Part shown: one piece after another, positions 34,935 to 60,500 of the stretch | Layout of the letters: each line of letters starts with the position of its first letter | Position numbering within the stretch: the stretch's first letter is position 1 | Assembly: GCA_965112735.1 (NCBI GenBank) | Contig: OZ218952.1 | Coordinates: 5,456,001-5,520,000, forward strand | Source of the DNA: Phaeosaccion multiseriatum | Lineage: Eukaryota > Protista > Ochrophyta, other classes | DNA length: 64,000 bases | Direction of reading: 5' to 3' | Notes under the pieces: generated by a model | What the model was told of the DNA's origin: nothing | Databases searched by the model: none | What the model saw: the letters and a program-made list of their open reading frames with translations, nothing else | Translations under genes and position numbers: made by a program

Positions 34935-37900
34935 ATGTCTAGCGTCCTCGACGAGCAGCGTAGCATACTCACAACCATCTTTCACGCCACGAGCGGACCC
35001 GCTTGGTTTGACACTGCAGGATGGAACACGGAAGCACCATTGGAGACCTGGTTGGGAGTGGGCGTAGAGAATGGCTATGTGGTGAAGCTCAGCCTGTTTT
35101 TCAATGGCCTCAAAGGTGAGAGAGATGTGATTATGGTTGTTGCGCCTTGTGTCCTGAAGAGTTTTCTAAAGTCTTGAAGGTTCGAAAAGGTCGCTCTTTG
35201 TTCATGCAACAACATGTAATGGGTCTAGCATATTCGGGAAGGACGAAGTAAAGGGGGGCAAGAATGAGGCAGCGGCATGACCTGGTAGTCCAGCGATCTG
35301 TTCGCGTCCCCTTGACTTGACTTGATATTAGTATGGCGAACAACTTTCCCCACATCTCAGGGAGTATTCCGCCGCAATTTGGAGAGCTTTCGAACCTTCG
35401 AGAACTTTGGCTCCCCAAGAACAGTCTAGAAGGTAGGCGGTACGCACACCCGTTCGCGTCCCCTTGACTTGATATGAGTATGACCAAAGAACTTTCCACC
35501 CATCCGCAGGGAGTATTCCACCCGAGCTTGGATGTCTTGAGAAGCTTCAGTATTTGGTCCTCCAGAGCAACACTCTAGAAGGTAGGAGGTACGCGTACCC
35601 GTTCGCGTACCCGTTCGCGTCCCCTTGACTTGATATGAGTATGACCAAAGAACTTTCCTCCCATCCGCAGGGAGCATTCCACCCGTGCTTGGAGGTCTTC
35701 AGAACCTTGCGTTTCTGTCCCTCCGCGGCAACAAGCTCACCGGTGAGTGGTACACACACCCGTTCGCGTCCTCTTGACTTGATATTAGTATGACCAAAGA
35801 ACTTTCCCCCGCTCCATAGGGAGCATTCCAGCTGAGCTTGGAGGTCTGGAGAAGCTTCAGCAGCTGGTCCTCCACAACAACACTCTAGAAGGTAGGTGGC
35901 ACGCGAACCCGCTCGCGTCCCTTTCGCTTGAAAGTCGTATGACAAAGAACTTCCCTCCGCTCCGCAGGGAGCATTCCAAGGGAGCTTGGAAGTCTGGAGA
36001 AGCTTGAGTATTTGAACCTCTCCCGCAACGAGCTCACTGGTAAGTGGTACGCGTACCCGTTCGCGTCCCCTTGACTTGATATTTGTATGGCTGAAGAACT
36101 TTCCCCACATCTCAGGGAACATTCCGCCGCAACTAGGACAGCTTTCGAACCTTCGAGAACTTTGGCTCAACCGGAACCGTCTAGAAGGTAAGTGGTACGC
36201 ACACCCGTTCGCGTCCCTTTCGCTTGATATGAGTATAACCAAAGAACTTTCCTCCCATCCGAAGGGAGCATTCCAAGGGAGCTTGGAAGTCTGGAGAAGC
36301 TTGAGCAGTTGGACCTCTCCGACAACAAGCTCACTGGTAAGTGGCACGCACACCCGTTCGCGTCCCTTTCGCTTGATAGTAGCGTGACCAAAGAGCTCTC
36401 CTTCCATCCACAGGGAACCTTCCCAAGGAGTTGGGGAAGCTTTCAAACCTTCGAGAACTAGGGCTCTCGGGGAACAATCTAGAAGGTGAGTGGTACATTT
36501 TCCCCTTTCGCGTCCTCTTGACTTGATGTTTAGTATGGCTGAAGAACTTTCCTCCCATCCGCAGGGAGGATTCCGCCGCAACTTGGACAGCTTTCAAACC
36601 TTCAATACCTACGGCTCGATAAAAACAATCTAGAAGGTAGGTGGTACGCACACCCGTTCGCGTCCCTTTGACTTGATATCAGTATGACCAGAGAACCTTC
36701 CTCCGCTTCGCAGGGAACATTCCACCAGAGCTTGGGCGTCTGCAGAACCTGGCCGTGCTCAACCTTGGCAAAAACCAGCTCACTGGTAAGTGGTACGCAC
36801 ACCCGTTCGCGTCCCTTTGACTTGGTGTAAGTATGACCAAAGAACTTTCCTCCGCTCCGCAGGGAAGATTCCGCCCCAGCTTGGAAGTCTGGAGAAGCTT
36901 GAGGTTTTGAGCCTCTCTGGCAACAGGCTCACTGGTAGGTGGTACGCGAAACCGTTCGCGTCCCTTTGACTTGATATTAGTATGGCTGAAGAACTTTCCC
37001 CACATATCAGGGAGCATTCCGCCGCAGCTTTCGCAGCTTTCAAACCTTCGAGGACTTCGGCTCAACCGGAACAGTCTAGAAGGTAGGTACGCACACCCAT
37101 TCGCGTCCCTTCGACTTGCTATGAGTATGACCAAAGAATTTTCCTCCCATCCGAAGGGAGCATTCCAAGGGAGCTTGGACAGCTTTCGCACCTTCGAGAA
37201 CTTAAGCTCCACCAGAACAGTCTAGAAGGTAGGTGGTACGCACACCCATTCGCGTCCCTTCGACTTGCTATGAGTATGACCAAAGAATTTTCCTCCCATC
37301 CGAAGGGAGCATTCCAAGGGAGCTTGGAAGTCTGGAGAAGCTTAAGTCTGTGGACCTCTCCTCCAACAAGCTCGCTGGTAAGTGGGACGCGTACCCGTTC
37401 GCGTCCCTTTCATTTGATACTAGAGTAAGGAACATGGCGAGATTTTCGATGAGCCAAATTGTGAGTGGTCCGGCTCCATGGCGACGTACAGCTTGACCCA
37501 CTGCTGCCTTTCAAGACTCGCCACGCATCCTCCGCCGTGCCGTTCTACCTTGTCGCATCCCTGCCTGCAGGCTTTGCAACGGGCACGAATGAAGATTCGA
37601 TACTCAGATTTTGCAATGGGATCCTCTTTAGGGTGGAAGACAACCCGCTTCAGTACCCGCCAGTTGGGGTGCTGCTGCAAGGACGGCACATGACGCAAAA
37701 GTACTTCGATGACTTGCGGAAGTGTTCAAAAGAAGTAAGGAGCCTCAAGGCCATGCTCTTAGGGCCCACAACAGTAGGCAAGACCAGGTACGATATGCCC
37801 TCTTCGTCACTTTGTCCTGTCTAGCTATGTGCGATGGGCGACAGAGGAGTTCGAGGGCAGGAGAGAGGAGGGGAGAACTACTAAGATACACGCGTCTCGT

Positions 37901-40900
37901 TGTCCCCGCTGCTCTTGATTAGCTTCCGACATGCCTCCCCCCCCCCCGACGTTTCGTCCTTGTGTAGTTTGATGCGTAGCATCATAGCAAGGCGGCCCAC
38001 AGCAACGGTGGAAGGGGAGAACCCGTCGACGGTCGGTGTTCACGTCGAGGGCTGCGAGCTCAAGACGTCGGAGGGTTCGGTTGTATCGTGTCGCTTCTTC
38101 GACTGTGGTGGTCAGCAAGACTATCACGGCCTGAGCAGCATGTTTATGACAGAAGGAGCTGCCTACCTGCTGGTTTGGAGTCCGCCCGACGATCCAAATG
38201 GCGCTGAGCTTGAACCGTTCTTTGAAATGCTCAAGCACGGCGCTTCGAAGTCCACTGCGCTCGGTGTAGCCAATAAATGCGACCAGTGGAAGGGGGCTCA
38301 GAGCGATTTGACGGCACGCTGTACGTCATTTCACAGTGTTGTGAAGAAGGAGCTGCGGGAGGGGCGCATAGCGTTGGGGGAAAAAATACACATGACGAGC
38401 TGCAAGGAGGACGGAGGGCGGGAGGAGGAGCTAAGGGTGTTGATGGAGGCGCTAACGGACCTAGGCCAGACGTACGTAGTGGGTCCCTTGCTCGAGAAAG
38501 CAGTGGCCCTTCTGGACCGCATGGCGAAGGGGCACATCTTTCTGACAATGGGTGAAGTGGAAGAAGCGTGGAAGGTGGAGTTGCAGAAGGACGGAGACGA
38601 AGACGAGGACAAGGAGCTTGCGGATGTGATGCTCCAGTGCGGAGTCAATATGCTGTAAGTACGGAGGGCCTTTGGGGCGAGTTTGTGCGGAATTGAGCGA
38701 GCCTATTAGCTGGGTATGGTCCAGATTCCCAAGGTTGTTGGCGTGGCTGAATACGGTTCGGACCAGCAAGGGCCGTTTTGTATTGAGTCCGAGGCAAGAG
38801 GGAACGTAAGCACCCGTGGGGGGCGGGGGTAGCTAGATCACTTTCCCGCCGTGCCCCTCTCATTGCATCTCTCGGTGGGCGTGCAGGGACAGGAACGGAA
38901 GACTCGTGGTGGCTGGAGGCGTGGAGAAAGGTGCAGCCATTGTTCTTTCAGAGGCGGCTTTGTTTTCCAAGTTGATCAGTCCGCTCCTGACTCCGGCCGA
39001 TGCCATCACTTCCGACGGTGAAGAAGTGCTTCTCGGCCGCAACGAGGTGTGTGTGAGATGGCAAAGAAAGATAGGAAGGGTTAGAACTTGGCCAGAGTTT
39101 ACTGATGTTGTGTCGTCCGTCTGACATGCCTCCCCCCTTGTCCACACTTTTCTCTTTGCTTGCCTCCACCTGCCGTATCCTCGGTATTGCTTTTTGTGTG
39201 CCCCCCACGGAAGGGACCTTTCACACCATCCGAACTGAAGCCACTGAAGCCGAAGCGACAAGTGGACGACGACGATGGACTTAAACTTGACAGGTGTGGT
39301 GCCAACCAACTCAAAGATGAGGTGCTGACGGTTGGCTTTGCCAGATCGGTGTGGAACGCCGTTCTTCTTCGTGAGGGGGGGGGCGGGGGAAGGACTTTCG
39401 ACGAACAACAAGAAAAGGCTCTGCTGGGAAGGTTGGTGGACCTGGGCATCATTTTTGAGAAGGCTGAGCACGACAATGACTCGGGAGGGGTCATTGGTGG
39501 TGGCAATCCTACCAAGGGGCAAGAGCTCCAATTCGTGGTCTCCCTCCGCATGCCAGATGCGATGGACAGCTCGAACAAGCAAGCGCAGGCATTGAGAGAA
39601 GCGGCGGATGCGATCAGTGAGAAGATGAAGGAAGGGGAATACTTGAAGCAGGTGTACCTCCAGCTGGAGCGCCCCCCTTCCCCCGGGACCATTGCCAGGC
39701 TGGTGTCTACTCTTTCCACCAAGGGACTCGGTGAGGTGGCGGTGGGCTGGAGGCAAGGGGCGTTGTTCGTCGATGCACAACAGGCGTACATGGCCTTTGT
39801 CAGCTATGACTGGAAAAAAGAACGGTTGTACCTGAAGGTGGCTGGCCAATGGGAAGAAGGAGAGGCGCAGGTGAGGAAGAGGGAGGGGGGTCACATGCGG
39901 GGACTGATGTACTCACCACCGGGTCGCACTTATTCTGACTCTTGCAAGTTGTGTTTCTCCACTTTTTCTGTTTTGCGCTTCATCAACAATGCAACAAAGT
40001 GCGACTTTTTCCCGACCGTTGCGATGGGCTTGTTGCTCCGGCACACAGTCCACCATCTCTCCTCCTACAAGTGCCGGTGGAAGGCCGTGTACGTTGTGAA
40101 GGACATGAAAGAAGAGTGGGGGCCACTCTGTGAGGTAAGAGAGAGTGTGTGCGCTGTGCTTGTGGTATAGTCGAGGCTTCTCTCGTGCCAGAGAAGCGTT
40201 GCTATCAGCTTGCGTGTGGCTGACAGATATCATAACCTTTGTGTTGTGGGACGGAAACAGGGAGACCTTCAGGAACTCGGGTGTGTGCTGGATAGCAGGT
40301 CGAGGAAAGCTGAGGCAGGCACAAACGAGCAGCGCCGGCTGTCGGAACAGGATGTCGAGGGGCTGATCGCTACACCCGTCCCGAGCCCCCGCTGGGCGCC
40401 GCCGACCCTGGCCTTGGATCACTTTGGAGACAAGTGGAAGAGGGTCTGCGAGGATTTTAAAAAGGAGGCTTTCGGTACACTACGGACTTGCGTGGAAATG
40501 TTCACGAAAAACCAGGTACGAGGCTGCTGGGAGCTAAAAGTAGACCTGTGTGACGACTTGTGCTCTCCAAAACCTGTGTTCTGACGCCGAATTCCTTTTG
40601 TCCCTCTCTTCTCTCGAAGGGATACCTGCGGAAGGCGCGAGAGGAGCTTCTCAAAGACGGCGAAAGTCTTGTAATGAAGGACGACACGGAGTACCAAGTC
40701 TTCCTGAGCCACGCTGGGACGGAGAAGCGGGGCATTGTGTCTCTGCTGCACAGATGTCTGTGGCAGAGAGGAATTCCGACTTTCTTGGATGAGACAAGTT
40801 TGCGCGCAGGAGACCGCGCGGAGGACAAGATGCTCAAGGTGGCTGACACCGCCCCGATTGGCGTGGTCGTGCTGAGTCCGTCTTTTGTGCGCCGAGAGTG

Positions 40901-41270
40901 GCCTCTTCAGGAGATGCAAATCTTCATGGAAAGGGCGGAGAAGGAGAAAGCAGTGTTGGTGCCGTTATTCTTCGGACTGACGGTTGAGGAATGCTGGGAC
41001 ACGGGCAAATTAGAAGACAACCATCCTGACGTGAAGAAGACATGGGGAGACTGGAGCGAAGGGGAGGGAGGGGTTTGGGGTTGGCTTGAGCAGGGGAAGA
41101 CAGCAGACAAGCTTGCGAAAGACCTGCTGGGGGGTGTGGGTACGCACACGGGTCTCCGCGACGACCAGAAAGAAGATCTGTTTGCTTTCGCCAAAAGAGT
41201 GGCCAACAAGGTGGAAAGGGCATTGACGACGTTTCATTCCAAGTCCGAGAAAAGAAAGTTCGAAGGGTAG
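34935..41270 (+). CDS. LRR-ROC-COR-TIR protein, paralog 2; N-cap plus 14 LRR exons
   Basis: Same exon structure as paralog 1. Roc motifs and the TIR (WPLQE) are intact. Stop at 41270. Confidence 0.88.
35361..37377 (+). repeat. LRR cassette array 2 (14 x 72-bp exons)
   Basis: Exon starts: 35361, 35510, 35671, 35820, 35968, 36116, 36265, 36414, 36565, 36714, 36863, 37011, 37157, 37306. Confidence 0.95.
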
Positions 41271-42154
41271 GAGGGGGGTTCCACGCTGACATGCACGTGT
41301 GAGGGGGGGGGGGGGGGGGGCAGAAGCCCGGACGTGACGGATACCATAACACAAGAATGAGATTGTATATAAATGTAGTGGAAGGAAGGTCCAGAAACGT
41401 GACGTCCAGCTCAGAACGCCAGCCAGAGCCGCCAGCCTTCGGGCCTACGTGCTTCCACGCCGGGCCTTCTCAGGCGGTGGTCTTGTTTTTGGACTCTGCT
41501 TGCCTCTTGTCTATCTGTCTGTCTACCACTCTAGTTCGCTCGTTCGCTCGCTTGCTCCTCCACGCTCCTTTGATGCATTGGTGTAACTTTGGTGTGCGTT
41601 GGTGTGCCTCACGCTTAACTTGTGTGGTGGGCCGTCAAGGACCATCCACTTCACATACACAGTACTAGAACGGAGGGGAGCGGCCGCTTTTCATGTGGAG
41701 CCCTTGTCATGTTGCAAGTTGCTGGGCGATGAGTCAGGCAACGTCTTAGCACCGTAGGAATCACATTGCGGGGTCCGGCCTCTCTCTCCGCTCTAGTCGT
41801 ATAAATACATGTATGTGTAGTGGATGGAGAATTAAATTTAATCCATAAACTATAATTGAATTGACAGATGGTATTAAAAAAATGGTATTACACAATAGGA
41901 GAGCTTGCTTGGGTTGTGCTCAAACACATAAGACCATGCAACAAGTACCCCTCCCCTTACCCTACAAACCCTGGGCCAGACAGGTTAACCGCCCCCGCCC
42001 CCTCGGTCTTTCCCACTTGGGCCTCTAAGAACCCATTGTTTGCTTACCTGGGCCTCAGGGTATCTAGTGTTTGCCTACTTCGACCTCAGTTGGGCCCCAG
42101 GGTACCCATTACCCATTGTTCGCTTACTTGGGCCTGAGGGTGCCCATTATGTGC

Positions 42155-43720
42155 TTACTTGGGCCTCAGGGTGTTGATTATCTTGGCTCTATCGTCGTCA
42201 TACACGTCTTCCCCGAGCCCAATCTTGGGGTTGCTCAGGAACTCGTTCTGAGGAGGAGGAGGAAGAGGAGCAGGAGGAGGAGGAGGACGAGCAGCAGCAG
42301 CAGCAGGAGGAGGGTGAGGAGGAGCAGCAGGAGGAGGGTGAGGAGGACACACACACAGGCACACACACACGCCCAGACAACACGGGCAAACACAAACACA
42401 CACATACACGCACACCCACACATACACACATATATACACACGCCGACACACATACACACACATACATACACACACCCACCTGCGCATCGTCGCTCTGATA
42501 CACACACGAGAGCAGCGGGTTGTCGTCAAGATCGCCCACAAAGGCCCATGTATTCATGCCGTTCTTACACGTGTTGACCTCCTTATCCGACAGCAAATGG
42601 CGACGCTGCAGCACCTCTACCACGTTAGCGGGCCTCAGCACACACGCCGGCTTGACGTCCGCTTGGCTCACATGGATGGAGAAGGGGTTGAAGGTGACAA
42701 ACACGCGTTGGTCCAGAGCCATGGCGGAGGAACCGTATATCTGCGGAGGATTGAGGATGGAATAGGAGGAGGAGGCGGAGGAGGACGGAGGAGAAGGAGG
42801 AGGAGGAGGATGGACGAGGAGGAGGAGGAGGAGGATGGAGGATGGAGGATGAGGAGGAGGAGAAGGAGGAGGATAAATAGCAGTGTATGAATGGCAGTGG
42901 ATGGTGGAGGAGCGGGCCCGGGTGGGGTGGGGTGGGTGGTGGGGTGGCAGAACAGAGTAGAGAGGAGTAGAGGCATGAGACAGAGAGAGGACAATGGTGC
43001 ATCAGGACTGATCAGGACTGACACTCAAACAAAGTGTGGCATGCTCTCTCCTCTTCCCTCTCCTCTGTTCGCCCCTCTCTGCCTCCTCTCCAGCTAGACT
43101 GACGGAATGACGGACGAACGGAAGTGGGGGTGGGCTTGCGCCCTCCTCTCTCCCCTCTCTCCTCTATTCTTTTCTCGCTCTCCTCTCTCCTCCGGTCTCT
43201 TTCTCACCTCTCCTCTTTCTCCTCTATTCTCTCCCTCCCCTCTCTCCTCTGTTCCCTCTCCTCTTTCCTCCTCCTCTCTGGTCTCTCTCTCCTCCGTTCT
43301 CTGTCCTCTGTTCTTTGTACTCTCTCCTCTGCTCCCTGTCCTCTCTCCTCCGGTGTCTCTCTCTCCTCTCTCCTCTGTTCACTGTCTCTGTTCTTTGTAC
43401 TCTCTCCTCTGCTCCCTGTCCTCCCTCCTCCGGTCTCTCTCTCCTCCCTCCTCCGTTCTCTGTCCTCTGTTCTTTGTACTCTCTCCTCTCTTCCCTGTCC
43501 TCTCTCTTTCCTCCGGTCTCTCTCTGCTCTCCCCTCTGTTCTCACCTCTACCTGTACCTGGCAAATACTCTCTCCTCTGTTCTCCCCTGTACCTGTACCT
43601 GGCAAATATTAGGGTTCGGCGCTTGGCGGTCGATGGCGTCTCGGCTGGCAAGGTCCTTCGGGTTGGTGTTGATGGCGGAGTCAAGCGTTACGCCCGTGCC
43701 TATACCGAGCACGAACATGC
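42155..43720 (-). pseudogene. DUF3172-like gene fragment, copy 2
   Basis: Same three exons as 30919-32384, truncated at the same junction. Confidence 0.72.
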
Positions 43721-44462
43721 CTGCGACGACAGAGAGAGGAGGGGGAGGGGGAGGTAGAGACAAGAGAGCGAGGGCGCGCACACGCAGAGACGGGAGGCGT
43801 CAGTCGGAGAGGGGAAAAGAGAGCCCCTCTATCGTCTCCAGACGTCGGTGCATGAGCTGCTGCGGTTGAGACTGTGGTGGCCGGTTGCCAACAGCATCAG
43901 TGTGCAAGACACCCTCCAGGTGACTCACCCGAGCCTGCATCGCTCGTCCTGTCAATGGGGCCTACGCAGGCGCTGGTCGTCCCCCCGACCCACCACTAGT
44001 ACTGCCACTGGCTGCATCACCAAACAAGGCTTCCTCTGCAGTAGTGCTCCATGGAGAGCGAGTATATGGCAGCAGCGGAAGCAGTGAAGGAGCTACTGTT
44101 TCATAGAGGTTTGGCGCAACGACGGCGAGAACGGGAGCTACCCTTACGGAGTTGGCTTTGCACGAGGATAACCAGGAAAGGGGGAAGAAGGGGAAGTAGG
44201 GGGAAAGGAACGCAAGTTCGAAGCGAACACGCCACACCGACGTCCGTTATCATTTCTGCAGTACCACGTGCGCAAGAGGACGAAAAGAAGGGCTGGCACC
44301 TCAGCCCAGCCAGGTACACAGCGGTCTGGCATTTTCAAGGTCACATCCATTTGTGAATTTGATGGATTCAAAGCTCGTTCAGCGTGTGTCTAAGTAATGA
44401 AGTAATGGTGAGACGTTACTTTTAGACAACCATAGGATGGCACTTAAGGGTGTATATCTCAG

Positions 44463-45549: not shown

Positions 45550-48500
45550 ATGTCTAGCGTCCTCGACGAGCAGCGTAGGATACTCACGACCGTCTTTCAA
45601 GCCACGAGCGGACCCGCTTGGTCTAACTCTGCAGGATGGAACACGGAAGCACCATTGGAGACCTGGTTCAGAGTGAGCGTAGAGAAAGAGAATGGCTATG
45701 TGGTGACGCTCGCCCTGAATTACAACGGCCTCAGAGGTGAGAGAGGTGTGATTATTGTTGTTGCGCCTTGGGTCCTGAAGAGTTTTCTAAAGTCTTGAAG
45801 GTTCGAAAAGGTCGCTCTTTGTTCATGCAACAACATGTGATGGGTCTAGCATATTCGGGAAGGACGAAGTAAAAAAAAAAATGAGGCAGCGGCATGACGT
45901 GGTAGTCCAGCGACGCGTCCCCTTGACTTGACTTGATATTAGTATGGCTGAACAACGTTCTCCACATCTCAGGGAGCATTCCGCCGCAACTAGGACAGCT
46001 TTCGAACCTTCGAGAACTTTGGCTCAACGGGAACAGTCTAGAAGGTAGGTGGTACGCGTACCCGTTCGCGTCCCTTTCACTTGATGTAAGTATGACCAAG
46101 AACTTTCCTCCGCTCCGCAGGGAATATTCCGCCCGCGCTGGGAGATCTGAAGAACCTTCAGGTTCTGGCCCTCTACGAAAATGAGCTCACTGGTAAGTGG
46201 TACGCACACCCGTTCGCGTCCCTTTCACTTGATGTAAGTATGACTGAAGAACTTTCCTCCGCTCCGCAGGGAATATTCCGCCCGAGCTTGGAGATCTGCA
46301 GAACCTTCAGGGTCTGTACCTCAACGACAACAAGCTCACTGGTGAGTGGTACGCACACCCGTTCGCGTCCCTTTCGCTTGATGTTAGTGTGACCAAAGAA
46401 CTTTCCTTCGCTCCGCAGGGAGCATTCCACCCGAGCTTGGAAGTCTTCAGAACCTGAAGGTGCTCAACCTCTTTGTCAACAGGCTCACTGGTAGGTGGTA
46501 CGCGAACCCGTTCGCGTCCCTTCCACTGATTTATGTATAACCAAAGAGCTTCCATCCGATACAGGTCCTATTCCCGCTGCCCTCATTGAGCGTTTGGAAG
46601 TCCAGATCACCAGTTACAATTTCGAGGGCAATATGTTAAGCCTTCCAGAAGACATCGGCACCCAGACACATCTTACCAAGCTCGATTTGTCTCGCCAGGG
46701 CCTTGTAGGTAGGTGGTACGCGAACCCGTTCGCGTCCCTTTCACTTGATATGAGTATGACCACGGAACTTTCCCTCCATACTCAGGGAGCATTCCAACAG
46801 AGCTTGGAAGTCTACAGAACCTTGAGATGCTGAAACTCAGTGGCAATCAGCTCTCTGGTAAGTGGTACGCACACCCGTTCGCGTCCCTTCGACTTGATAT
46901 GAGTATGACCAAAGAACTCTCCCTCATCCGCAGGGAGCATTCCACGCGAGCTTGGAAGTCTGGAGGGGCTTGTGAGACTGGCCCTCGACAACAATCAGCT
47001 CACTGGTAAGTGGTACGCACACCCGTTCGCGTCCCTTTTACTTGATATGAGTATGACCAAAGAACTTTCCCCCCATCTCAGGGACTATTCCGCCGCAACT
47101 TGGAGAGCTTTCGCACCTTCGAGTACTTTGGCTCAGCGGGAACAATCTAGAAGGTATGTGGTACGCGAACCCGTTCGCGTCGCGTCCCTTTGATTTGATG
47201 TACGTATGACCAAGAACTTTCCTCCGCTCCGCAGGGAACATTCCGCCCGAGCTTGGAAGTCTTGAGAACCTGAAGCGGCTCGCCCTGCAGAGAAACAGGC
47301 TCACTGGTAAGTGTACGCACACCCGTTCGCGTCGCGTCCCTTTGACTTGATATAAGTATGACTGAAGAACTTTCCTCCGCTCCGCAGGGAACATTCCCAA
47401 GGAGTTGGGGGAGCTGACAGAGCTTCTAGAACTTAAGCTGGGATGGAACAAACTCGATGGTAGGTGGTACGCGAACCCGTTCGCGTCGCGCCCCTTTGAT
47501 TTGATGTACGTATGACCAAGAACTTTCCTCCGCTCCGCAGGGAGCATTCCGCCCGAGCTTGGAGGTCTGGAGAAGCTTGAGAATTTGGACCTCTTCAACA
47601 ATGAGCTCACTGGTGAGTGGTACGCACACCCGTTCGCGTCCCTTTGGCTTGATAGTCGTATGACAAGGAAAGTCCCTCCGCTCCGCAGGGAACATTCCGT
47701 TGGAGCTTGGAAGTCTGGAGAAGCTTGGGCGATTGTCTCTCGCTTCCAACAAGCTCACTGGTGAGTGGTACGCACACCCGTTCGCGTCCCTTTCGCTTGA
47801 TAGTAGCGTGACCAATGAGCTCTCCTTCCATCCACAGGGAACCTTCCCAAGGAGTTGGGAGATCTGACCCACTTGTCGTGGCTCTGGCTGCACTACAACA
47901 AGCTCACCGGTGAGTGGTACACACACCCGTTCGCGTCCCTTCCACTGATTTATGTATAACCAAAGAGCTTCCATCCGATACAGGTCCTATTCCCGCTGCC
48001 CTCATTGGGCGTTTGGAAGTCCAGATCACCAATTGCGTTTTCACGGGCAATGCGTTAAGCCTTCCAGACGACATCGGCACCCAGACACATCTTATCAAGC
48101 TCGATTTGTCTCACCAGGGCCTTGTGGGTAGGTGGTACGCACACCCGTTCGCGTCCTCTTGACTTGATATTGGTAGGGCTGAAGAACTTCCCCCCATCTC
48201 AGGGACTATTCCGCCGCAACTTGGAGAGCTTTCGCACCTTCGAGACCTTGATCTCAGCAGGAACAATCTAGAAGGTAGGCGGTACGCGCACCCGTTCGCG
48301 TCCCTTTGACTTGATATTAGTATGGCTGAAGAACTTTCCCCACATCTCAGGGAGCATTCCGCCGCAACTTGGGCAGCTTTCGCACCTTCGAGAACTTAAG
48401 CTCCACCAGAACAGTCTAGAAGGTAGGTGGTACGCACACCCATTCGCGTCCCTTTCGCTTGATACTTGGGTAGGGAACATGGCGAGATTTTCGATTAGCC

Positions 48501-51500
48501 GCTTCTGAGTGGTCCGGCTCCCTCGGCGACGTTCAGCTTGACCCACTACTGCATTTCAAGACTCGCCACGCATCCTCCGCCGTGCCGTTCTACCTTGTCG
48601 CATCCCTGCCTGCAGGCTTTGCAACGGGCACGAGTGAAGATTGGATACTCTTATTTTGCCCGGGCAAGAGTCACTACTTTCGCGTGCAAGATAACCCGCT
48701 TCAGTATCCGCCAGTTGGGGTGCTGCTGCAAGGACGGCACATGACGCAAAAGTACTTCGATGACTTGCGCAAGTGTTCAAAAGAAGTAAGGAGCCTCAAG
48801 GCCATGCTCTTAGGACCCACAACTGTGGGCAAGACCAGGTACGATAATGCCCTCTTCGTCACTTTGTCCTGTCTAGCTAAGTGCGATGGGCGACAGAGGA
48901 GTTCGAGGGCAGGAGAGAGGAGGGAAGAACTGCTAAGATACACACGTCTCGTTGTCCCCGCTGCTCTTGATTAGCTTCCAACATGCCCCCCCCCCCCCCC
49001 CCCGACGTTTCGTCCTTGTGTAGTTTGATGCGTAGCATCATAGAAGGGCGGCCCACAGCGGTGGAAGAGGAGAACCCGTCGACGGTCGGTGTTCACGTCG
49101 AGGGCTGCGAGCTCAAGACGTCGGAGGGTTCGGTTGTATCGTGTCGCTTCTTCGACTGCGGTGGTCAGCAAGACTATCACGGCCTGAGCAGCATGTTTAT
49201 GACAGAAGGAGCTGCCTACCTGCTGGTTTGGAGTCCGCCGGACGATCCAAATGGCGATAAGCTTGAACCGTTCTTTGAAATGCTCAAGCACGGCGCTTCG
49301 AAGTCCACTGCGCTCGGTGTAGCCAATAAATGCGACCAGTGGAAGGGGGCTCAGAGCGATTTGACAGCACGCTGTACGTCATTTCACAGTCTTGTGAAGG
49401 AGCAGCTCCGCAAGGGGCGCATAACGTTGGGGGAAGGAGTGCACATGACGAGCTGCGAGAAGGAGGGAGGGCGGGAGCAGGAGCTGAAGGTGTTGATAGA
49501 GAAGTTAACGGGCCTAGGCCAGACGTACGTAGTGGGTCCCTTGCTCGAGAAAGCAGTGGCCCTTCTGGACCGCATGGCGAAGGGGCACATCTTTCTGACA
49601 ATGGGTGAAGTGGAAGAAGCGTGGAAGGTGGAGTTGCAGAAGGACGGAAACGAAGACGAGGACAAGGAGCTTGCGGATGTGATGCTCCAGTGCGGAGTCA
49701 ATATGCTGTAAGTACGGGGGGCCTTTGGGGCGAGTTTGTGCGCAATTGAGCGCGCCTATTAGCTGGGTATGGTCCAGATTCCCAAGGTTGTTGGCGTGGC
49801 TGAATACGGTTCGGACCAGCAAGGGCCGTTTTGTATTGAGTCCGAGGCAAGAGGGAACGTAAGCACCCGTGGGGGGCGGGGGTAGCTAGATCACTTTCCC
49901 GCCGTGCCCCTCTCATTGCATCTCTCGGTGGGCGTGCAGGGACAGGAACGGAAGACTCGTGGTGGCTGGAGGCGTGGAGAAAGGTGCAGCCATTGTTCTT
50001 TCAGAGGCGGCCTTGTTTTCCAAGTTGATCAGTCCGCTCCTGACTCCGGCCGATGCCATCACTTCCGACGGTGAAGAAGTGCTTCTCGGTCGCAACGAGG
50101 TGTGTGTGAGATGGCAAAGAAAGATAGGAAGGGTTAGAACTTGGCCAGAGTTTACTGATGTTGTGTCGTCCGTCTGACATGCCTCCCCCCTTGTCCACAC
50201 TTTTCTCTTTGCTTGCCCCCATCTGCCATATCCTCGGTATTGCTTTTTTGTTGCCCCACGGAAGGGACCTTTCACACCACCCGCACTGAAGCCACTGAAG
50301 CCGAAGCGACAAGTGGACGACGACGATGGACTTAAACTTGACAGACGTGGTGCCAACCAACTCAAGGATGGGGTGCTGACGGTTGGTTTCGCCAGATCGG
50401 TGTGGAACGCTGTTCTTCTTCGTGAGGGGGGGGACGGGGGAAGGACTTTCGACGAACAACAAGAAAAGGCTTTGCTGGGAAGGTTGGTGAACCTGGGCAT
50501 CATTTTTGAGAAGGCTCAGCACGACAATGCGCCGGGAGGGGTCAATGGTGGTGGCAATCCTGCCGAGGGGCAAGAGCTCCAATTCGTGGTCTCCCTCCGC
50601 ATGCCAGATGCGATGGACAGCTCGAATGGGCGAGCGCAGGAATTGAGAAAAGCGGCGATTGCGATCAGTAAGACGATGAAGGAATGCGAATACTTGAAGC
50701 AGCTGTACCTTCAGCTGGAGCGCCCCCCTTCCCCCGGGACCATTGCCAGGCTGGTGTCTACTCTCTCCACCAAGGGACTCGGTGAGGTGGCGGTTGGCTG
50801 GAGGCAAGGGGCGTTGTTCGTCGCCGCCCAAGAGGCGTACATGGCATTTGTCAGCTATGACTGGACGAAACAACGCTTGTACCTGAAGGTGGCTGGTCTG
50901 TGGGAAGAAGGGGAGAAGCAGGTGAGGAAGAGGAAGGGGGGTCATATACGTGGCCTGATGTACTCACCACCGGGTCGCACTTACTCTGACTCTTGCAAGT
51001 TGTGTTTCTACACCTTTTTTTTTTTGCGCTTCATCAACAATGCAACAAAGTGCGACTCTTTCCCGACCGTTGCGATGGGCTTGTTGCTCCGGCACACGGT
51101 CCACCACCTCTCCTCCTACAAGTGCCGGTGGAAGGCCGTGTACGTGGTCAAGGACATGAAAGAAAAGTGGGAGCCACTCTGTGAGGTAAGAGAGAGTGTG
51201 TGCACTATGCTTGTGGTATGGTCGAGGCCTCACTCGTGCCGGATAAGTGGTGCTCTCAACTTTGGTGCGGCTGACAGATATCATAACCTGTGTGTTTTGG
51301 ACGGAAACAGGGAGACCTTCAGGAACTCGGGTGTGTGCTGGATAGGTCGAGGGAAGCTGAGGCAGGCACAAACGAGCCGGGCCCGCTGTCGGAACAGGAT
51401 GTCGAGGGGCTGATCGCTACACCCGTCCCGAGCCCCCGCTGGGCGCCGCCGACCCTGGCCACGGGTCACTTTGGAGAAGAGTGGAAGACAGTGCGCGACA

Positions 51501-52337
51501 AGTTTGAAGGGGAGGCTTTCGGTACACTACGGACTTGTGTGAACACGTTCACGAAAAACCAGGTACAAGGCTGCTGCGAGCGAAGAGTAGGCCCAAGAGT
51601 AGGCCTGTGTTGACGACTTTGCTCTCCGAAACCTGTGTTCTGACGCCGAATTCCTTTTGTTCCTCTCTTCTCTCGAAGGAATCCCTGCGGAAGGCGCGAG
51701 AGGAGCTTCTCAAAGACGGCGAAAGTCTTGTAATGAAGGACGATACGGATTACCAAGTCTTCCTGAGCCACGCTGGGACGGAGAAGCGGGGCATTGTGTC
51801 TCTGCTGCACAGATGTCTGTGGCAGAGAGGAATTCCGACTTTCTTGGATGAGAGAAGCCTGGAGGCAGGAGACCGCGCGGAGGACAAGATGCTCCAGGTG
51901 GCTGACACCGCCCCGATTGGCGTGGTCGTGCTGAGTCCGTCTTTTGTGCGCCGAGAGTGGCCTCTTCAGGAGATGAAAATCTTCATGGAGAGGGCGAAGA
52001 AGGGGGAAGCAACGCTGGTGCCGTTATTCTTCGGGCTGACGGTTGAGGAATGCTGGAACACGCAGCTACTACAAAAGAACCATATCCTGACGTGAGGGAT
52101 ACGTGGGGCGAATGGGGAGCAGGGGAAGGAGGGGATTGGGATTGGCTAGAGGAGGGAGAGACAGCGGTAGGGCTTGCTCAACGCCTGCTGGGGGGTGTGG
52201 GTACGCACACGGGTCTCCGCGACGACCAGAAAGAAGATCTGTTTGCTTTCGCCAAAAGAGTGGCCAACAAGGTGGAAAGGGCATTGACGACGTTTCATTC
52301 CAAGTCCAAGAAAAGAAAGGCAGAAGCCCTGACATGA
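45550..52337 (+). CDS. LRR-ROC-COR-TIR protein, paralog 3; 16 LRR exons (two are 144 bp); frameshift late in the TIR exon
   Basis: Same structure as the other paralogs. AACCATATCCTGAC at ~52078-52091 versus AACCATCCTGAC in paralogs 1 and 2 gives a stop at 52095; the ancestral frame would end at 52337. Confidence 0.82.
45973..48422 (+). repeat. LRR cassette array 3 (14 x 72 bp plus 2 x 144 bp)
   Basis: Exon starts: 45973, 46121, 46270, 46419, 46565 (144 bp), 46786, 46934, 47082, 47235, 47388, 47541, 47689, 47838, 47984 (144 bp), 48203, 48351. Confidence 0.95.
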
Positions 52338-53116
52338 CGGGTACCGTAGCACAAGAATGAACTTGTATATAAATGTATTGTGTAGTGGAAGGAAGATCCA
52401 GAAACGTGACGGCCAGCCAGAGCCGCCAGCCTTCGGGCCTACGTGCTTCCACGCCGGGCCTTCTCAGGTGGTGGCCTTGTTTTTGGACTCTGCTTGCCTC
52501 TTGTCTGTCTCTCTCGTTCGCTCGCTCGCTCGCTCCTCCACGCTCCTTTGGTGTAACTTTGGTGTGCGTTGGTGTGCCTCACGCTTGACTTGTGTGGTGA
52601 GCCGTCAAGGACCCTCCACTTCACATACACGTGTTGTACTAAAATAAAACGGAGGGGAGTCCTTGTCATGTTGCAAGTTGCTGGGATGTGAGTGAGGCAA
52701 CGTCTTAGCACCTTAGGAATCACATTGCGGGGTCCGGCCTCACTCTCCGCTCTAGTCGTACAAATTAATCCATAAACTATAATTGAATTGACAGATGGTA
52801 TTAAAAAAAAATGGTATTACACAAAAGGAGAGCTTGCTTGGGTTGTGCTCAAACACATAAGACCATGCAACAAGTATACCCCTCCCCCTTACCCTACAAA
52901 CCCTGGCCCAGACAGGGTAACCGCCCCCCCCCTCGGTCTTTCCCACTTGGGCCTCTAAGAACCCATTTTTTGCTTACATGGGGCTCTCAGGGTACCCATT
53001 GTTTGCTTACCTGGGCCTCAGGGTATCTAGTGTTTGCCTACTTCGACCTCATTTGGGCCCCAGGTACCCATTACCCATTGTTCGCTTACTTGGGCCTGAG
53101 GGTGCCCATTATGTGT

Positions 53117-54735
53117 TTACTTGGGCCTCAGGGTGTTGATTATTTTGGCTCTATCGTCGTCATACACGTCTTCCCCGAGCCCAATCTTGGGGTTGCTCAG
53201 GAACTCGTTCTGAGGAGGAGGAGGAGGAGGAGGAGGAGGAGGAGGAGGAGGAGGAGCAGGAGGAGGAGGAGGAGCAGCAGGAGGAGGAGGAGGGTGAGGA
53301 GGAGCAGCAGGAGGAGGAGGAGGAGGGTGAGGAGGACACACACACACACAGGCACACACACACGCCCAGGCAACACGGGCAAACACACACGCCCAGACAG
53401 CACGGGCAAACTCAAACACACACATACACGCACACCCACACATACACACACATGCACACATATATACACACGCCGACACACATACACACACACCCACACA
53501 CCCACCTGCGCATCGTCGCTCTGATACACACACGAGAGCAGCGGGTTGTCGTCAAGATCGCCCACAAAGGCCCATGTATTCATGCCGTTCTTACACGTGT
53601 TGACCTCCTTATCCGACAGCAAATGGCGACGCTGCAGCACCTCTACCACGTTAGCGGGCCTCAGCACACACGCCGGCTTGACGTCCGCTTGGCTCACATG
53701 GATGGAGAAGGGGTTGAAGGTGACAAACACGCGTTGGTCCAGAGCCATGGCGGAGGAACCGTATATCTGCGGAGGATTGAGGATGGAGGAGGAGGAGGAG
53801 GAGGATGGAGGAGAAGGAGGAGGATGGAGGAGGAGGAGGAGGAGGATGATGGAGGATGGAGGAGGAGGAGGAGGAGGAGGAGGAGGAGGAGGAGGAGGAG
53901 GAGGAGGAGGAGGAGGAGGAGGAGGAGGGGGAGCGGGCCCGGGTGGGGTGGGGTGGGTGGTGGGGTGGCAGAACAGAGTAGAGAGGAGTAGAGGCATGAG
54001 ACAGAGAGAGGACAATGGTTCATCAGGACTGATCAGGACTGACACTCAAACAAAGTAGAGGCATGAGACAGAGAGAGGACAATGGTTCATCAGGACTGAT
54101 CAGGACTGACACTCAAACAAAGTAGAGGCATGAGACAGAGAGAGGACAATGGTGCATCAGGACTGATCAGGACTGACACTCAAACAAAGTGTGGCGTGCT
54201 CTCTCCTCTTCCCTCTCCTCTGTTCGCCCCTCTCTACCTCCTCTCCAGCTGGACTGACGGAATGACGGACGAACGGAAGTGGGGGTGGGCTTGCGCCCTC
54301 CTCTCTCCCCTCTCTCCTCTATTCTGTTCTCGCTCTCCTCTCTCCTCCGGCCTCTTTCTCCCCTCTCTCCTCCGGTCTGTTTCTCTCCTCTCTCCTATCC
54401 TCTTTCTCCTCTATTCTCTCCCTCCCCTCTCTCCTCTGTTCCCTCTCCTCTCTCCTCCTCCTCTCTGGTCTCTCTCTCCTCTCTCTTTCCTCCGGCGTCT
54501 CTCTCTCCCCTCTCCTCCGTTCTCTGTCCTCCGTTCTTTTTACTCTCCTCTCTTCCCTGTCCTCTCTCTTTCCTCCGGTCTCTCTCTCCTCTCTCCTCTG
54601 TTCTCCCCTGTACCTGGCAAATATTAGGGTTCGGCGCTTGGCGGTCGATGGCGTCTCGGCTGGCAAGGTCCTTCGGGTTGGTGTTGATGGCGGAGTCAAG
54701 CGTTACGCCCGTGCCTATACCGAGCACGAACATGC
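53117..54735 (-). pseudogene. DUF3172-like gene fragment, copy 3
   Basis: Same three exons, truncated at the same junction. Confidence 0.72.
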
Positions 54736-55649
54736 CTGCGACGACAGAGAGAGGAGGGGGGGGGAGGGGGAGGTAGAGACAAGAGAGCGAGGGCGCGCAC
54801 ACGCAGAGACGGGAGGCGTCAGTCGGAGAGGGGAAAAGAGAGCCCCTCTATCGTCTCCAGACGTCGGTGCATGAGCTGCTGCGGTTGAGACTGTGGTGGC
54901 CGGTTGCCAACAGCATCAGTGTGCAAGACACCCTCCAGGTGACTCACCCGAGCCTGCATCGCTCGTCCTGTCAATGGGGCCTACGCAGGCGCTGGTCGTC
55001 CCCCCGACCCACCACTAGTACTGCCACTGGCTGCATCACCAAACAAGGCTTCCTCTGCAGTAGTGTTCCATGGAGAGCGAGTATATGGCAGCAGCGGAAG
55101 CAGTGAAGGAGCTACTGTTTCACAGAGGTTTGGCGCAACGACGGCGAGAACGGGAGCTACCCTTACGGAGTTGGCTTTGCACGAGGATAACCAGGGGTGA
55201 CAGGAGGAAAAAGGGGTGTATCCAGTGGGAAAGGAACGCAAGTTCGAAGCGAACACGCCACACCGACGTCCGTTATCATTTCTGCAGTACCACGTGCGCA
55301 AGAGGACGAAAAGAAGGGCTGGCACCTCAGCCCAGCCAGGTACACAGCGGTCTGGCATTTTCAAGGTCACATCCATTTGTGAATTTGATGGATTCAAAGC
55401 TCGTTCAGCGTGTGTCTAAGTAATGGTGAGACGTTACTTTTAGACAACCATAGGATGGCACTTAAGGGTGTATATCTCAGGCCCAGTCTTCCTTCCGTAA
55501 TGAGACTGGCCAGCGTCGATTTGGGAGTTGCAAATGGAGCAGTGCTTGACAGGGAAGGGGCGAGAATAGCCCTCAGGACATTTTGGCCGACGTCGCAGGA
55601 AGAGCCGCACCAGTCAAGAGAGCACGAGCATCGGACATCATTTTGAAGG

Positions 55650-57240
55650 TTTTATATATTACACCCTTAAGTGCCATCTATGGTTGTCTAAAAGTAATGT
55701 CTCACCGCCCCGGGGAACTTAGCCCTCGAGGGCGTGTCCCTCTGACTCATCAGTTCTCCCCATTGGAACAAAGTTGATACCAGCCAGGATCCTGTGTCGA
55801 ACCGATCGTTCGTGTCGGGCCCGCTGGAGCGCTACGGCTAATCGTCGCCGAATGACGCAAACAGCTCTCGCGTAAGCCCTCGTGTCCAGATGTTCGTGCC
55901 CCCCAGCCATGTGGGTGGCGAGTGTTTTCATCAACATCTGAGCAGAAGGACCAAATGCACCTTGCTGTTCTATTGCGAAAGGGACGAGGTGGTATCGCGT
56001 GGGGTCATAGTGGATGTCCCCACCCTGGCCTTCCATGCCTACCTGTGGCACCCCATACCTGGTCCGCTTGGTAGCTTCAGCCTTCTTGGCTGCCGCGAGT
56101 GCCTCCTTCGATGCCTTGGCCCGGTTGGTGGTGTTGGTGGCATCTGTGAGCGTGACGTCGATCATGAGGGACTTGTGGCCGTCGCCATATTCATGATCGG
56201 ACGGAAGCTCAAACATCCTGGGGGGAGTCACGATGTCCATCTCCATCTGCTTGGCCACGTGGGCGTCACTCCTCACGGCGTTGCTCCCCCCTCTCCCTCG
56301 TCGCGGGGTGATCGTTCTTGCCCTCATGAAGAAGGGGAAGCTGGTGTTCTGGACTATCCCTCTGCCCAGGCCCTCGCTCTTCAGCAGGGCGACAAGTGCC
56401 TTCTGCACAGCGTCGTGTTGGGGTGTGCTGAGCCCCGTCTTCGTGCAGGTAACGATGTGCCCCTCCGTCAGCGCCTTGCCAGGGCACTTATGACAGTCCT
56501 TGCTGTAGGTGGGGTCAAAGCCAAGTCTTCGCCGAATGGCACTCTTGTGCTCGGCGTCTGTGAGGTGGAGTGGTGCTCCCCCTGCCGTCTTGGTCGGCTG
56601 AAGGTGGAGCCACGCACCAGCACCTTTCACGCTGTGGCTGAGGGCTCTGGCCAGGTACTTCTCCCGTTGGTCCTGCTGTGGAATGGCTTTCAATCGTTCC
56701 AAGAAGTCCGCCCTCGCCTTCGACGTGAGGAGCTTGGTATAACGCTTCTGGGCGCCTCGCCGCTCTCCGTGTCGGCTGTGTGGAATGGAGGGTCCTCCCT
56801 CGTCCAACATCCTGGTTTCCTCTGTCCGCCAGCGTGGCCGGCCGCCCTCATCATCGTCATCATCACCGCCTGGTTCCACATCATGCTCATCCTCAGGGGC
56901 TGCGTCACTTCCACCATCTGGGTCGTCACTTTCACCCTGTGGGTCTTCATCACTCCCCCCCCCTGGGTCTGCCTCGCTATCAGAGGTTGGTCCATCTGCG
57001 GTCCCCTGCTGCCCTGCCGCCGCGTCGCACCCTTCCGCACCCACCCCAGGGTGTATCCCTGCGGCCCCAACATTATCCTCTTCGTCTAAGTCTGCTCCTT
57101 CACCCCCAGATTGTGTCTCATCCCCCCCGGGGGCATCACTCGCCGCCGGCTGGTCCCCTCTGCCACCGACAGGTGTGTACCCTTCATGCTCTGGGGTGTC
57201 GTCTCTCTCCGGGAAGAGCGTGGTGATCAGCCAGGCATCA
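55650..57240 (-). mobile_element. Longest 5'-truncated CRE-like fragment (acidic linker, CCHC, RLE, 3' UTR)
   Basis: ORF 55719-57044, open upstream to ~57240, with the same motifs as 33750-34765. No RT motifs. No clear TSD, and adjacent host sequence is deleted relative to unit 2. Confidence 0.82.
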
Positions 57241-57506
57241 GTCAGTCATCAGTCAGTCATCAGTCAGTCACATGGCTGAGGGCAAGGCACGGTCTTTCCA
57301 CATCCTGCACTCGCCATTTGTGAGTCCCTCGTACTTTGCTCCTCCTGCCTCGCCTCCCCCCTTCTCCCACTTCTTGCCAACTCCAACCCTCTTCTCTCCT
57401 CCTCCTCCTCCTCCTCCCTGCCGAGGGCGCAGCCCGAAGCACCACCTTGTAAGGGTGTAATTATATCTAAGTAAGCGATTTTTTTGGCGTGTTCGAAGGT
57501 TGCAGG

Positions 57507-60500
57507 ATGTCTAGCGTCCTCGACGAGCAGCGTAGGATACTCACAACCATCTTTCACGCCACGAGCGGACCCGCTTGGTCTAACACTGCAGGATGGAACA
57601 CGGAAGCACCATTGGAGACCTGGTTCGGAGTGGGCGTAGAGAATGGCTATGTGGTGAAGCTCGACCTGATAAGCAATGGCCTCAAAGGTGAGAGAGATGT
57701 GATTATGGTTGTTGCGCCTTGGGTCCTTAAGAGTTTTCTAAAGTCTTAAAGGTTCGAAAAGGTCGCTCTTTGTTCATGCAACAACATGTGATGGGTCTAG
57801 CATATTCGGGAAGGACGAAGTAAAGGGGGGCAAGAATGAGGCAGCGGCATGACGTGGTAGTCCAGCGATCCGTTCGCGTCCCCTTGACTTGACTTGATAT
57901 TAGTATGACTGAACAACTTTCCCCACATCTCAGGGAGTATTCCGCCGCAATTTGGAGAGCTTTCGCACCTTCGAGAACTTTCTCTCATCGCGAACAATCT
58001 AGAAGGTAGGTGGTACGCACACCCGTTCGCGTCCCTTTCGCTTGATTGTAGCGTGACCAAAGAGCTCTCCTTCCATCCACAGGGAACCTTCCCAAGGAGT
58101 TGGGAGATCTGACCAACTTGACGTGGCTCTCACTGGAAAACAACAAGCTCACCGGTGAGTGGTACACTTTCCCCTTTCGCGTCCTCTTGACTTGATATTT
58201 AGTATGGCTGAAGAACTTTCCTCCCATCCGCAGGGAGGATTCCGCCGCAACTTGGACAGCTTTCAAACCTTCAATACCTACGGCTCGATAATAACAATCT
58301 AGAAGGTAGGTGGCATATATATATATATATATATATACGCACACCCGTTCGCGTCCCTTTTACTTGATATGAGTATGACCAAAGAACTTTCCACCCATCC
58401 GCAGGGAGTATTCCACCCGAGCTTGGATGCCTTGAGAAGCTTCAGAATTTGGTCCTCCAGAACAACACTCTAGAAGGTAGGAGGTACGCGTACCCGTTCG
58501 CGTACCCGTTCGCGTCCCCTTGACTTGATATGAGTATGACCAAAGAACTTTCCTCCCATCCGCAGGGAGCATTCCACCCGTGCTTGGAGGTCTTCAGAAC
58601 CTTGTGTTTCTGTCCCTCAGCGGCAACAAGCTCACTGGTGAGTGGTACGCGCACCCGTTCGCGTCCCTTTCACTTGATATGAGTATGACCAAAGAACTTT
58701 CCTCCCATCCGAAGGGAGCATTCCAAGGGACCTTGGAAGTCTGGAGAGACTTGTGCGTTTGGACCTCTCCGACAACAAGCTCACTGGTAAGTGGGACGCG
58801 TACCCGTTCACGTCCCTTTCACTTGATACTTGGGTAGGGAACATGGCGAGATTTTCGATTAGCCCCTTCTGAGTGGTCCGGCTCCCTCGGCGACGTTCAG
58901 CTTGACCCACTGCTGCATTTCAAGACTCGCCACGCATCCTCCGCCGTGCCGTTCTATCTTGTCGCATCCCTGCCTGCAGGCTTTGCAACGGACACGAGTG
59001 AAGATTGGATACTCACATTTTGCAAGGGGATCCACTACTTTCAGGGGGAAGATAACTCGCCGCAGTACTTTCAGGTGCAAGATAATCCGCTTCAGTATCC
59101 GCCAGTTGGGGTGCTGCTGCAAGGACGGCACATGACGCAAAAGTACTTCGATGACTTGCGCAAGTGTTCAAAAGAAGTAAGGAGCCTCAAGGCCATGCTC
59201 TTAGGGCCCACAACAGTAGGCAAGACCAGGTACGATATGCCCTCTTCGTCACTTTGTCCTGTCTAGCTAAGTGCGATGGGCGACAGAGGAGTTCGAGGGC
59301 AGGAGAGAGGAGGGGAGAAATGCTAAGATACACACGTCTCGTTATTACCCACTGCTCTTGGTTAGCTTCCAACATGCCTTCCCCCCCCCCCGACGTTTCG
59401 TCCTTGTGTAGTTTGATGCGTAGCATCAGAGCAGGGCGGCCCAAAGCAACGGTGGAAGGGGAGAACCCGTCGACGGTCGGTGTTCACGTCGAGGGCTGCG
59501 AGCTCAAGACGTCGGAGGGTTCGGTTGTATCGTGTCGCTTCTTCGACTGTGGTGGTCAGCAAGACTATCACGGCCTGAGCAGCATGTTTATGACAGAAGG
59601 AGCTGCCTACCTGCTGGTGTGGAGTCCGCCCGACGATCCAAATGGCGCTGAGCTTGAACCGTTCTTTGAAATGCTCAAGCACGGCGCTTCGAAGTCCACT
59701 GCGCTCGGTGTAGCCAATAAATGCGACCAGTGGAAGGAGGCTCAGAGCGATTTGACGGCACGCTGTACGTCATTTCACAGTCTTGTGAAGGAGCAGCTCC
59801 GCGACGGGCGCATAACGTTGGGGGGGGAAATACACATGACGAGCTGCAAGGAGGACGGAGGGCGGGAGGAGGAGCTGAGGGTGTTGATGGAGGCGTTAAC
59901 GGACCTAGGCCAGACGTACGTAGTGGGTCCCTTGCTGGAGAAAGCAGTGGCCCTTCTGGACCGCATGGCGAAGGGGCACATCCTTCTGACAATGGGTGAA
60001 GTGGAAGAAGCGTGGAAGGTGGAGTTGCAGAAGGACGGAGACGAAGACGAGGACAAGGAGCTTGCGGATGTGATGCTCCAGTGCGGAGTCAATATGCTGT
60101 AAGTACGGAGGACCTTTGGGGCGAGTTTGTGCGGAATTGAGCGAGCCTATTAGCTGGGTATGGTCCAGATTCCCAAGGTTGTTGGCGTGGCTGAATACGG
60201 TTCGGACCAGCAAGGGCCGTTTTGTATTGAGTCCGAGGCAAGAGGGAACGTAAGCACCCGTGGGGGGCGGGGGTAGCTAGATCACTTTCCCGCCATGCCC
60301 CTCTCATTGCAACTCTCGGTGGGCGTGCAGGGACAGGAATGGAAGACTCGTGGTGGCTGGAGGCGTGGAGAAAGGTGCAGCCATTGTTCTTTCAGAGGCG
60401 GCCTTGTTTTCCAAGTTGATCAGTCCGCTCCTGACTCCGGCCGATGCCATCACTTCCGACGGTGAAGAAGTGCTTCTCGGTCGCAACGAGGTGTGTGTGA

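Follow-up and report, generated by a model that had tools for sequence, protein, structure and literature searches.

Two leucine-rich repeat exon pairs stand in opposite order in sister paralogs of a predicted algal receptor gene cluster

How can two blocks of exons come to stand in opposite order in two copies of one gene? The question is raised by a stretch of 64,000 nucleotides (nt) from the ochrophyte Phaeosaccion multiseriatum (GenBank assembly GCA_965112735.1, contig OZ218952.1, positions 5,456,001 to 5,520,000 of the forward strand), hereafter the window, within which all coordinates are given. Tandem-repeat and self-comparison analyses revealed a unit of ~11 kb that is present as four direct tandem copies, P1 to P4, each carrying an array of 149-bp units. 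Such a unit, or cassette, combines a 72-nt phase-2 exon, bordered by AG and GT, with a downstream intron of ~77 nt, and each 72-nt exon encodes a single leucine-rich repeat (LRR) whose frame starts at the third base of the exon. Two exon pairs, blocks X and Y, occur in one order in P2 and in the reverse order in P4. The origin that we favor for the P4 order, with a probability of about 0.7, is a cyclic permutation produced by misaligned homologous recombination.

Two exon pairs in opposite order

The blocks and the ends of the short P4 array are as follows.

35510 to 35742, + strand: block X in P2, LRR exons 2 and 3 with an 89-nt intron that carries a duplicated 12-mer
36337 to 36636, + strand: block Y in P2, intron i7, a chimeric exon 8 of which the first 22 nt alone are of the Y type, the Y intron with TTTCCCCTTTCGCG, and exon 9
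57934 to 58005, + strand: first LRR exon of P4, collinear with P2 exon 1 (35361-35432)
58083 to 58305, + strand: block Y in P4, LRR exons 2 and 3 plus the Y intron
58405 to 58637, + strand: block X in P4, LRR exons 4 and 5 plus the X intron
58715 to 58786, + strand: last LRR exon of P4, a fine-scale mosaic combining the type of P2 exon 7 with that of the last exons of P1 and P2

In P2, exon 1 is followed by X1, X2, four further exons, Y1, Y2, and another five exons. The X peptides begin with SIPPELGCLEKLQ at exon 2 (35510) and SIPPVLGGLQNL at exon 3 (35671), and the Y peptides with NLPKELG at exon 8 (36414) and RIPPQLGQLSNLQYLRLD at exon 9 (36565). In P4 the order is exon 1, Y1, Y2, X1, X2, and the last exon, with Y as exons 2 and 3 (starting at 58083 and 58234) and X as exons 4 and 5 (58405 and 58566). 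The ends of the two arrays are thus collinear and the interior blocks are swapped. A sequence-only reading of this DNA had described the reversal and argued that a single deletion is insufficient to produce it. We agree: both orders hold in the assembled sequence, and the coordinates, the peptides, and the total of 51 cassettes given in that reading were all correct when checked on the sequence.

Private marks in the introns allow the two blocks to be tracked, as had been claimed, because each occurs exactly twice in the window, once in P2 and once in P4. The duplicated 12-mer of the X intron is found at 35595-35618 and 58490-58513 (chance expectation 0), and TTTCCCCTTTCGCG of the Y intron at 36499 and 58168 (chance expectation 0.03). 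The introns that bear these marks are 100% identical between P2 and P4 in the case of X and 97.5% identical in the case of Y. The exons follow suit: in an all-against-all comparison, X1, X2, and Y2 are reciprocal best matches between the two paralogs, with identities of 0.958, 0.958, and 0.986, and the runner-up never exceeds 0.86. Among the reciprocal-best cassettes of P2 and P4, three of the 10 pair orders are discordant. The other paralog pairs hold few reciprocal-best cassettes above 0.86 identity and show one further discordance, in P1-P4 alone.

A maximum-likelihood tree was built from 49 cassettes, each represented by its exon with 45 nt of preceding and 12 nt of following intron; the two double-length exons of P3 were omitted. 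Its cassettes do not group by gene. Instead, the X1 copies of P2 and P4 pair with each other at 99% bootstrap (support 99/92), as do the Y2 copies (99/91), and both X2 copies fall within one small clade with branches of zero length. The first exons of P2 and P4 also pair (90/79), and the last exon of P4 joins the last exons of P1 and P2 (98/91). The shared unique marks, the nearest-neighbor identities, and the tree together establish the orthology of X1, X2, and Y2; a chance likeness of the blocks is ruled out by the intron marks and the tree. Two LRR exon pairs therefore stand in opposite order in the sister paralogs.

The cassette tree, which the sequence-only reading had named as the test of the reversal, thus upheld it. 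Y1 calls for a correction, since its P4 copy is sister to exon 13 of P3 (support 100/100). P2, P3, and P4 share an identical sequence in the intron preceding Y1 and in the initial 22 nt of the exon. The last 50 nt differ strongly between P2 and P4, by 12 mismatches plus gaps. In P2 exon 8, these 3′ 50 nt (36436-36485) have been replaced by a type ending in NNLE, and both flanking introns are still of the Y type. Y1 of P2 is therefore chimeric, with an exchange point inside the exon. A donor for the overwritten 3′ half was not found in the window, where the best match has 9 mismatches in 50 positions.

The divergence of the blocks speaks to their age. With fixed segment borders, P2 and P4 differ at 8 of 290 positions in X and, leaving out the overwritten half of Y1, at 7 of 250 in Y, or 2.8% each (Fisher p = 1). 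The flanks of the arrays differ by 3.4% upstream and, downstream, by 2.7% in the first half and 5.8% in the second. Because X and Y are as diverged as the flanks, they are about as old as the P2/P4 gene duplication itself, old orthologs rather than recent copies between genes. Ectopic conversion was among the causes put forward in the sequence-only reading; a recent conversion of Y from P2 to P4 is unsupported, since the divergence of Y equals that of X and is not below the flank rate (P = 0.16). An early BLAST figure for Y, 98.1% over 160 nt, had hinted at such a conversion before the fixed-border comparison. Four of the five amino-acid replacements in X1, X2, and Y2 lie at repeat positions 14, 18, or 19, which are among the four sites reported to be under positive selection in brown-algal ROCO repeats (Teng et al., 2024, PMC11378527).

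Junction introns and the origin of the P4 order

Three introns of P4 join cassettes that are not neighbors in P2.

58006 to 58082, + strand: junction J1, P4 exon 1 to Y1; 5′ end of the exon-1 type, 3′ part of the i7 type, switch at ~58016-58036
58306 to 58404, + strand: junction J2, Y2 to X1; 5′ end of the i9 type, 3′ part of the i1 type, switch at 58311-58371
58638 to 58714, + strand: junction J3, X2 to the last LRR exon; first bases of the i3 type, the rest of the i6 type (from ~58649-58668), switch at ~58640-58668

Alignment to the parental introns shows that all three are hybrids, and that each switches type in register, in its 5′ part and within or adjacent to a conserved core; the switch of J1 falls within the invariant core stretch containing CCCGTTCGCGTCCC. 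This core is near-invariant in 55 introns, and 55 of 55 copies lie on the + strand (23210-58816). J2 additionally carries a (TA)11 run (~58314-58337), the sole such run in the window, which stands in place of the single TA of the consensus GGTACGC and could be either a repair scar or a later microsatellite.

Does the core act as a dedicated signal, or is it simply where cassettes are most alike? When standard cassettes were compared in 903 pairs, the longest run of exact identity had a median of 19 nt. In about half of these comparisons the run covers intron positions +19 to +29; exon positions are covered in only 0-12%. No signal distinct from general homology emerged, as the core at the junctions coincides with the longest identity between cassettes. 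Plain homology therefore suffices for the placement of the junctions, and the core would be the likeliest point at which homologous recombination between non-orthologous cassettes is resolved, with no special signal necessary. P3 alone contains two 144-nt double-length exons (46565-46708 and 47984-48127), which include SLPEDIGTQTHLTKLDLSRQGLV and are ~94% alike. The first 15 nt of the introns of the two copies differ and the sequences are near-identical from the core onward, so that this duplicated unit, too, starts at the core.

The direction of change can be read from the position of Y1. The same i7-type intron precedes the Y1-type exon in P2 and in P3, and in each of these arrays the exon is found in the distal half. 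The place of Y1 directly after exon 1 in P4 is therefore the derived state, and P4, we infer, the rearranged copy. The reversal of two blocks is a cyclic permutation, and one misaligned exchange that places X behind Y, together with deletions, yields it. Germline homologous recombination between misaligned 149-bp cassettes, by unequal exchange between sisters or paralogs or by repair synthesis on a misaligned template, could have supplied each step. An initial exchange would have fused the intron that follows Y2 with the one that precedes X1, giving an array of the form exon 1, X ... Y, X ...; a deletion would then have joined exon 1 to the intron before Y1, and another would have joined X2 to a distal exon, with loss of the rest of the array. 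In a variant, repair synthesis would have copied Y in front of X, and a single deletion would have followed. The conserved 5′ intron core, or its immediate vicinity, would have been the site at which every exchange was resolved, always in register, and each product would have stayed in frame, because all exons are 72 nt long and in phase 2. The outcome would be a shorter receptor with a reordered binding surface. We favor such serial exchange because well-known processes suffice, because the last exon of P4 is a fine mosaic, and because the chimeric exons point to repeated small exchanges. Of the causes listed in the sequence-only reading, out-of-register exchange is thus the best supported, while excision and re-integration of a circle is not required; neither circles nor a dedicated recombinase are needed for the P4 order.

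Several observations weigh against this account. The intermediate array (exon 1, X ... Y, X ...) was not seen; the account requires no fewer than two or three events, in an order that is not recoverable; and the (TA)11 insertion at J2 is not predicted by simple homologous exchange. The unitigs from sequencing runs are short and all end at the repeated intron core, and in the four runs compared J1, J2, and J3 are bridged by none. Finally, it was argued for Ectocarpus that the shuffling of LRR exons is "not simply driven" by recombination between homologous sequences, as another exon type stays unshuffled (Zambounis et al., PMC3341825).

A different proposal is that a single complex replicative repair event, by serial template switching (fork stalling and template switching or microhomology-mediated break-induced replication, FoSTeS/MMBIR) or of a break-induced type, built P4 in one step. 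It would have switched from core to core, going from exon 1 ahead to Y, returning to X, and then moving on to the last exon. The (TA)11 run at J2 looks untemplated, and error-prone repair synthesis typically leaves such insertions; the same short homologous core was used at all three junctions, and one event is more parsimonious than three. Yet one event and three would look alike in the sequence, the TA repeats may have arisen later as a microsatellite, and the mosaic last exon of P4 suggests repeated small exchanges over time, so that we regard a one-step origin as unlikely. Tandem repeats are also known to shed circles, and a circle with the X ... Y segment, excised between two intron cores and re-integrated via a different intron with a subsequent deletion, would predict exactly the hybrid introns found at J1 and J2. 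Such a route needs as many events as a duplication plus a deletion, including a rare re-integration, and P4 no longer contains the stretch behind the old exon 7, where the presence or absence of a second Y copy would discriminate between the two. Moreover, no circle junction was seen: the go-back joints in the contigs carry foreign letters and derive from other loci. We consider this route highly improbable.

More prosaically, the P4 order might be an assembly artefact of a repetitive array, made of 149-bp repeats with identical cores, with low depth at the (TA)11 run and with junctions that no independent contig bridges. Four public sequencing runs, three from one sample and a fourth (X5) from another sample and study, were compared with positions 57500-59300 of the window (1801 letters). 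The three same-sample runs match P4-specific stretches without mismatch, and P4-specific variants are present in unitigs with 0 mismatches at 57937-58018, 58100-58228, 58398-58528, 58575-58650, and 58702-58788; the second of these links the P4-type Y1 to the Y intron. The differences between P4 and P2 are scattered throughout, hence P4 is no copy of P2 reads; a private (TA)11 run is not expected from a misjoin; and long reads can readily span an array of ~0.9 kb that has unique sequence on either side. An artefact accordingly seems very unlikely. The opposite extreme is a dedicated, possibly somatic, recombination system by which cassettes are actively reshuffled, with the intron core as the signal. 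Its appeal lies in the near-invariance of the core in 55 introns and in the mapping of every junction to it, and the hypothesis is already published: Zambounis et al. (PMC3341825) left the mechanism of shuffling open and suggested targeted somatic recombination, with the idea of an adaptive immunity. Against it, the core is simply the longest identity shared between cassettes; X and Y are as diverged as their flanks, and the rearrangement is therefore old and inherited, not ongoing; and Teng et al. (PMC11378527) state that no somatic recombinants or recombinase have been reported. We give such a system very little credence. The same slight chance attaches to its strongest form, in which the core is the true recombination signal of a cassette-shuffling system that may be active in somatic or germ cells, maybe via circles of n × 149 bp, and the P4 permutation with its (TA)11 scar is a fixed product. 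If that were true, algae would have a diversification of LRR-ROC-TIR receptors like that of the variable lymphocyte receptors (VLRs).

The gene cluster and its transcripts

What kind of gene has been permuted? The window is eukaryotic, intron-rich DNA of ~55% G+C, and each ~11-kb unit is predicted, on the evidence of its domains, to be an LRR-ROC-TIR receptor-like gene. The 51 cassettes are distributed over the four paralogs as 15 + 14 + 16 + 6.

23271 to 25415, + strand: LRR array of P1, 15 exons
35361 to 37377, + strand: LRR array of P2, 14 exons
45973 to 48422, + strand: LRR array of P3, 16 exons, two of which are the 144-nt double exons
57507 to 57687, + strand: N-terminal exon of P4, MSSVLDEQ...NGLK, with a phase-1 donor
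57934 to 58786, + strand: LRR array of P4, 6 exons
59155 to 62721, + strand: downstream exons of P4, which continue the frame of the LRR array and encode the Roc GTPase and TIR domains

The standard 72-nt exons (n = 49) have AG/GT borders and an intact frame and match GxxPxxLxxxxxLxxLxLxxNxLx. Brown-algal ROCO genes have a conserved N-terminal region of ~45 residues ahead of the LRRs; here, the first exon MSSVLDEQ...NGLK (60 residues) is conserved in all four paralogs and gave no match to Pfam LRRNT_2. Downstream of the array lies Roc (Pfam PF08477, E = 3e-08, above the curated cut-off), its P-loop exon in frame with the array, and a TIR domain (Pfam E = 7e-16) closes each of the four genes, encoded in P4 by the exon at 61903-62721 and in each paralog by the matching exon. 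The TIR assignment was confirmed by an Atlas search. The large exons that follow Roc gave no Pfam match to COR at E values as high as 5; in brown algae, COR was detected in just 18 of 111 ROCOs (Teng et al., PMC11378527). All splice sites of P4 are kept, and its frame is open from the first exon into Roc.

Downstream identity peaks in P2-P4 (94.9%) and P1-P3 (95.2%), with the other clean pairs at 91-93%, a pattern that would fit the duplication of a two-gene unit. P2 and P4 are sister copies within a four-gene tandem cluster, and both inherited the same X and Y cassette pairs. Between the gene units lies a repeat of ~550 bp with 98% identity (22030-22581, 34131-34666, inverted, and 55738-56289), and large (AGGG)n and (CTCC)n microsatellites with inverted flanks occupy 997-2000 and 20574-22037.

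Run X5 contains cDNA despite its label "DNA?". Its spliced contigs, assigned uniquely to P2 by letters private to that paralog (35091-35742), connect the first exon with LRR exon 1, the latter with X1, and X1 with X2; between X1 and X2 they skip 89 nt with GT..AG ends. P2 is therefore transcribed, and its cassettes serve as exons in RNA, spliced as predicted. Spliced contigs for P4 were not seen among the runs compared.

Relation to known shuffling systems

A scrambled order of LRR exons in recent duplicates of ROCO genes has been on record since 2012 for Ectocarpus, where these duplicates are near-identical except for a highly recombined LRR array (Zambounis et al., PMC3341825), and the gene design was later confirmed in four brown algae (Teng et al., 2024, PMC11378527). 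The present genes share with the brown-algal ROCO genes the single LRR per 72-nt phase-2 exon and the succession of LRR array and Roc, and the conserved first exon may correspond to their N-terminal LRR cap. The exon order is likewise not conserved between recent duplicates, locally rearranged fragments are traceable, and four of the five replacements in X and Y fall at the published hypervariable sites. The differences are equally tangible. Introns here are tiny (~77 nt) and uniform; unlike the Ectocarpus loci of 2012, the window is without reversed or inactivated intronic LRR exons, all 55 cores having the same orientation; and the genes end in TIR, whereas Teng et al. (PMC11378527) describe plain LRR-ROCO genes and do not list an LRR-ROC-TIR layout. 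Unlike in either of these papers, the breakpoints are here mapped to the intron core. The permutation thus belongs to the published exon-shuffling phenomenon, and what is particular is the cleanness of the case, its core-mapped breakpoints, and the TIR end.

A further parallel is offered by the 90-bp LRR exon arrays of Tetrahymena, for which unequal crossing-over within and between genes has been proposed as the shuffling mechanism (Xiong et al., 2019, PMC6564038). Those arrays, too, consist of tandem LRR exons of fixed length with phase-2 introns and variable exon number, but the exons measure 90 nt rather than 72, the lineage is unrelated, and a LINE-like element (long interspersed nuclear element) is implicated there while none was seen in the arrays here. 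In the classic model of circular permutation, a tandem duplication converts A-B into A-B-A-B, and loss of the outer parts leaves B-A. That outcome is precisely the relation of X and Y between P2 and P4; unlike in the classic model, the units are exon cassettes within a repeat array, and the first and last repeats are kept so that the interior alone is permuted. More broadly, in lamprey VLR assembly and in the unequal crossing-over of LRRs in plant nucleotide-binding LRR (NLR) genes, LRR modules recombine via short shared homology to give new binding surfaces. The VLR system differs in being somatic, in drawing on donor cassettes outside the gene, and in employing cytidine deaminases, and nothing here points to somatic activity; the LRRs of plant NLRs differ in not being encoded one repeat per exon.

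The picture of what these genes are is unchanged by the finding. Its value lies in a small, fully traceable case, in which two orthologous cassette pairs are reversed, three junctions lie in register at the core, and the age of the blocks is that of the gene duplication. The mechanism by which the LRR exons of algal ROCO genes are shuffled was left open at first description, and this locus supplies concrete junctions. On the origin favored here, misaligned homologous recombination of an ordinary kind, acting in the germline, is able to permute the binding surface of a receptor while its frame is kept.

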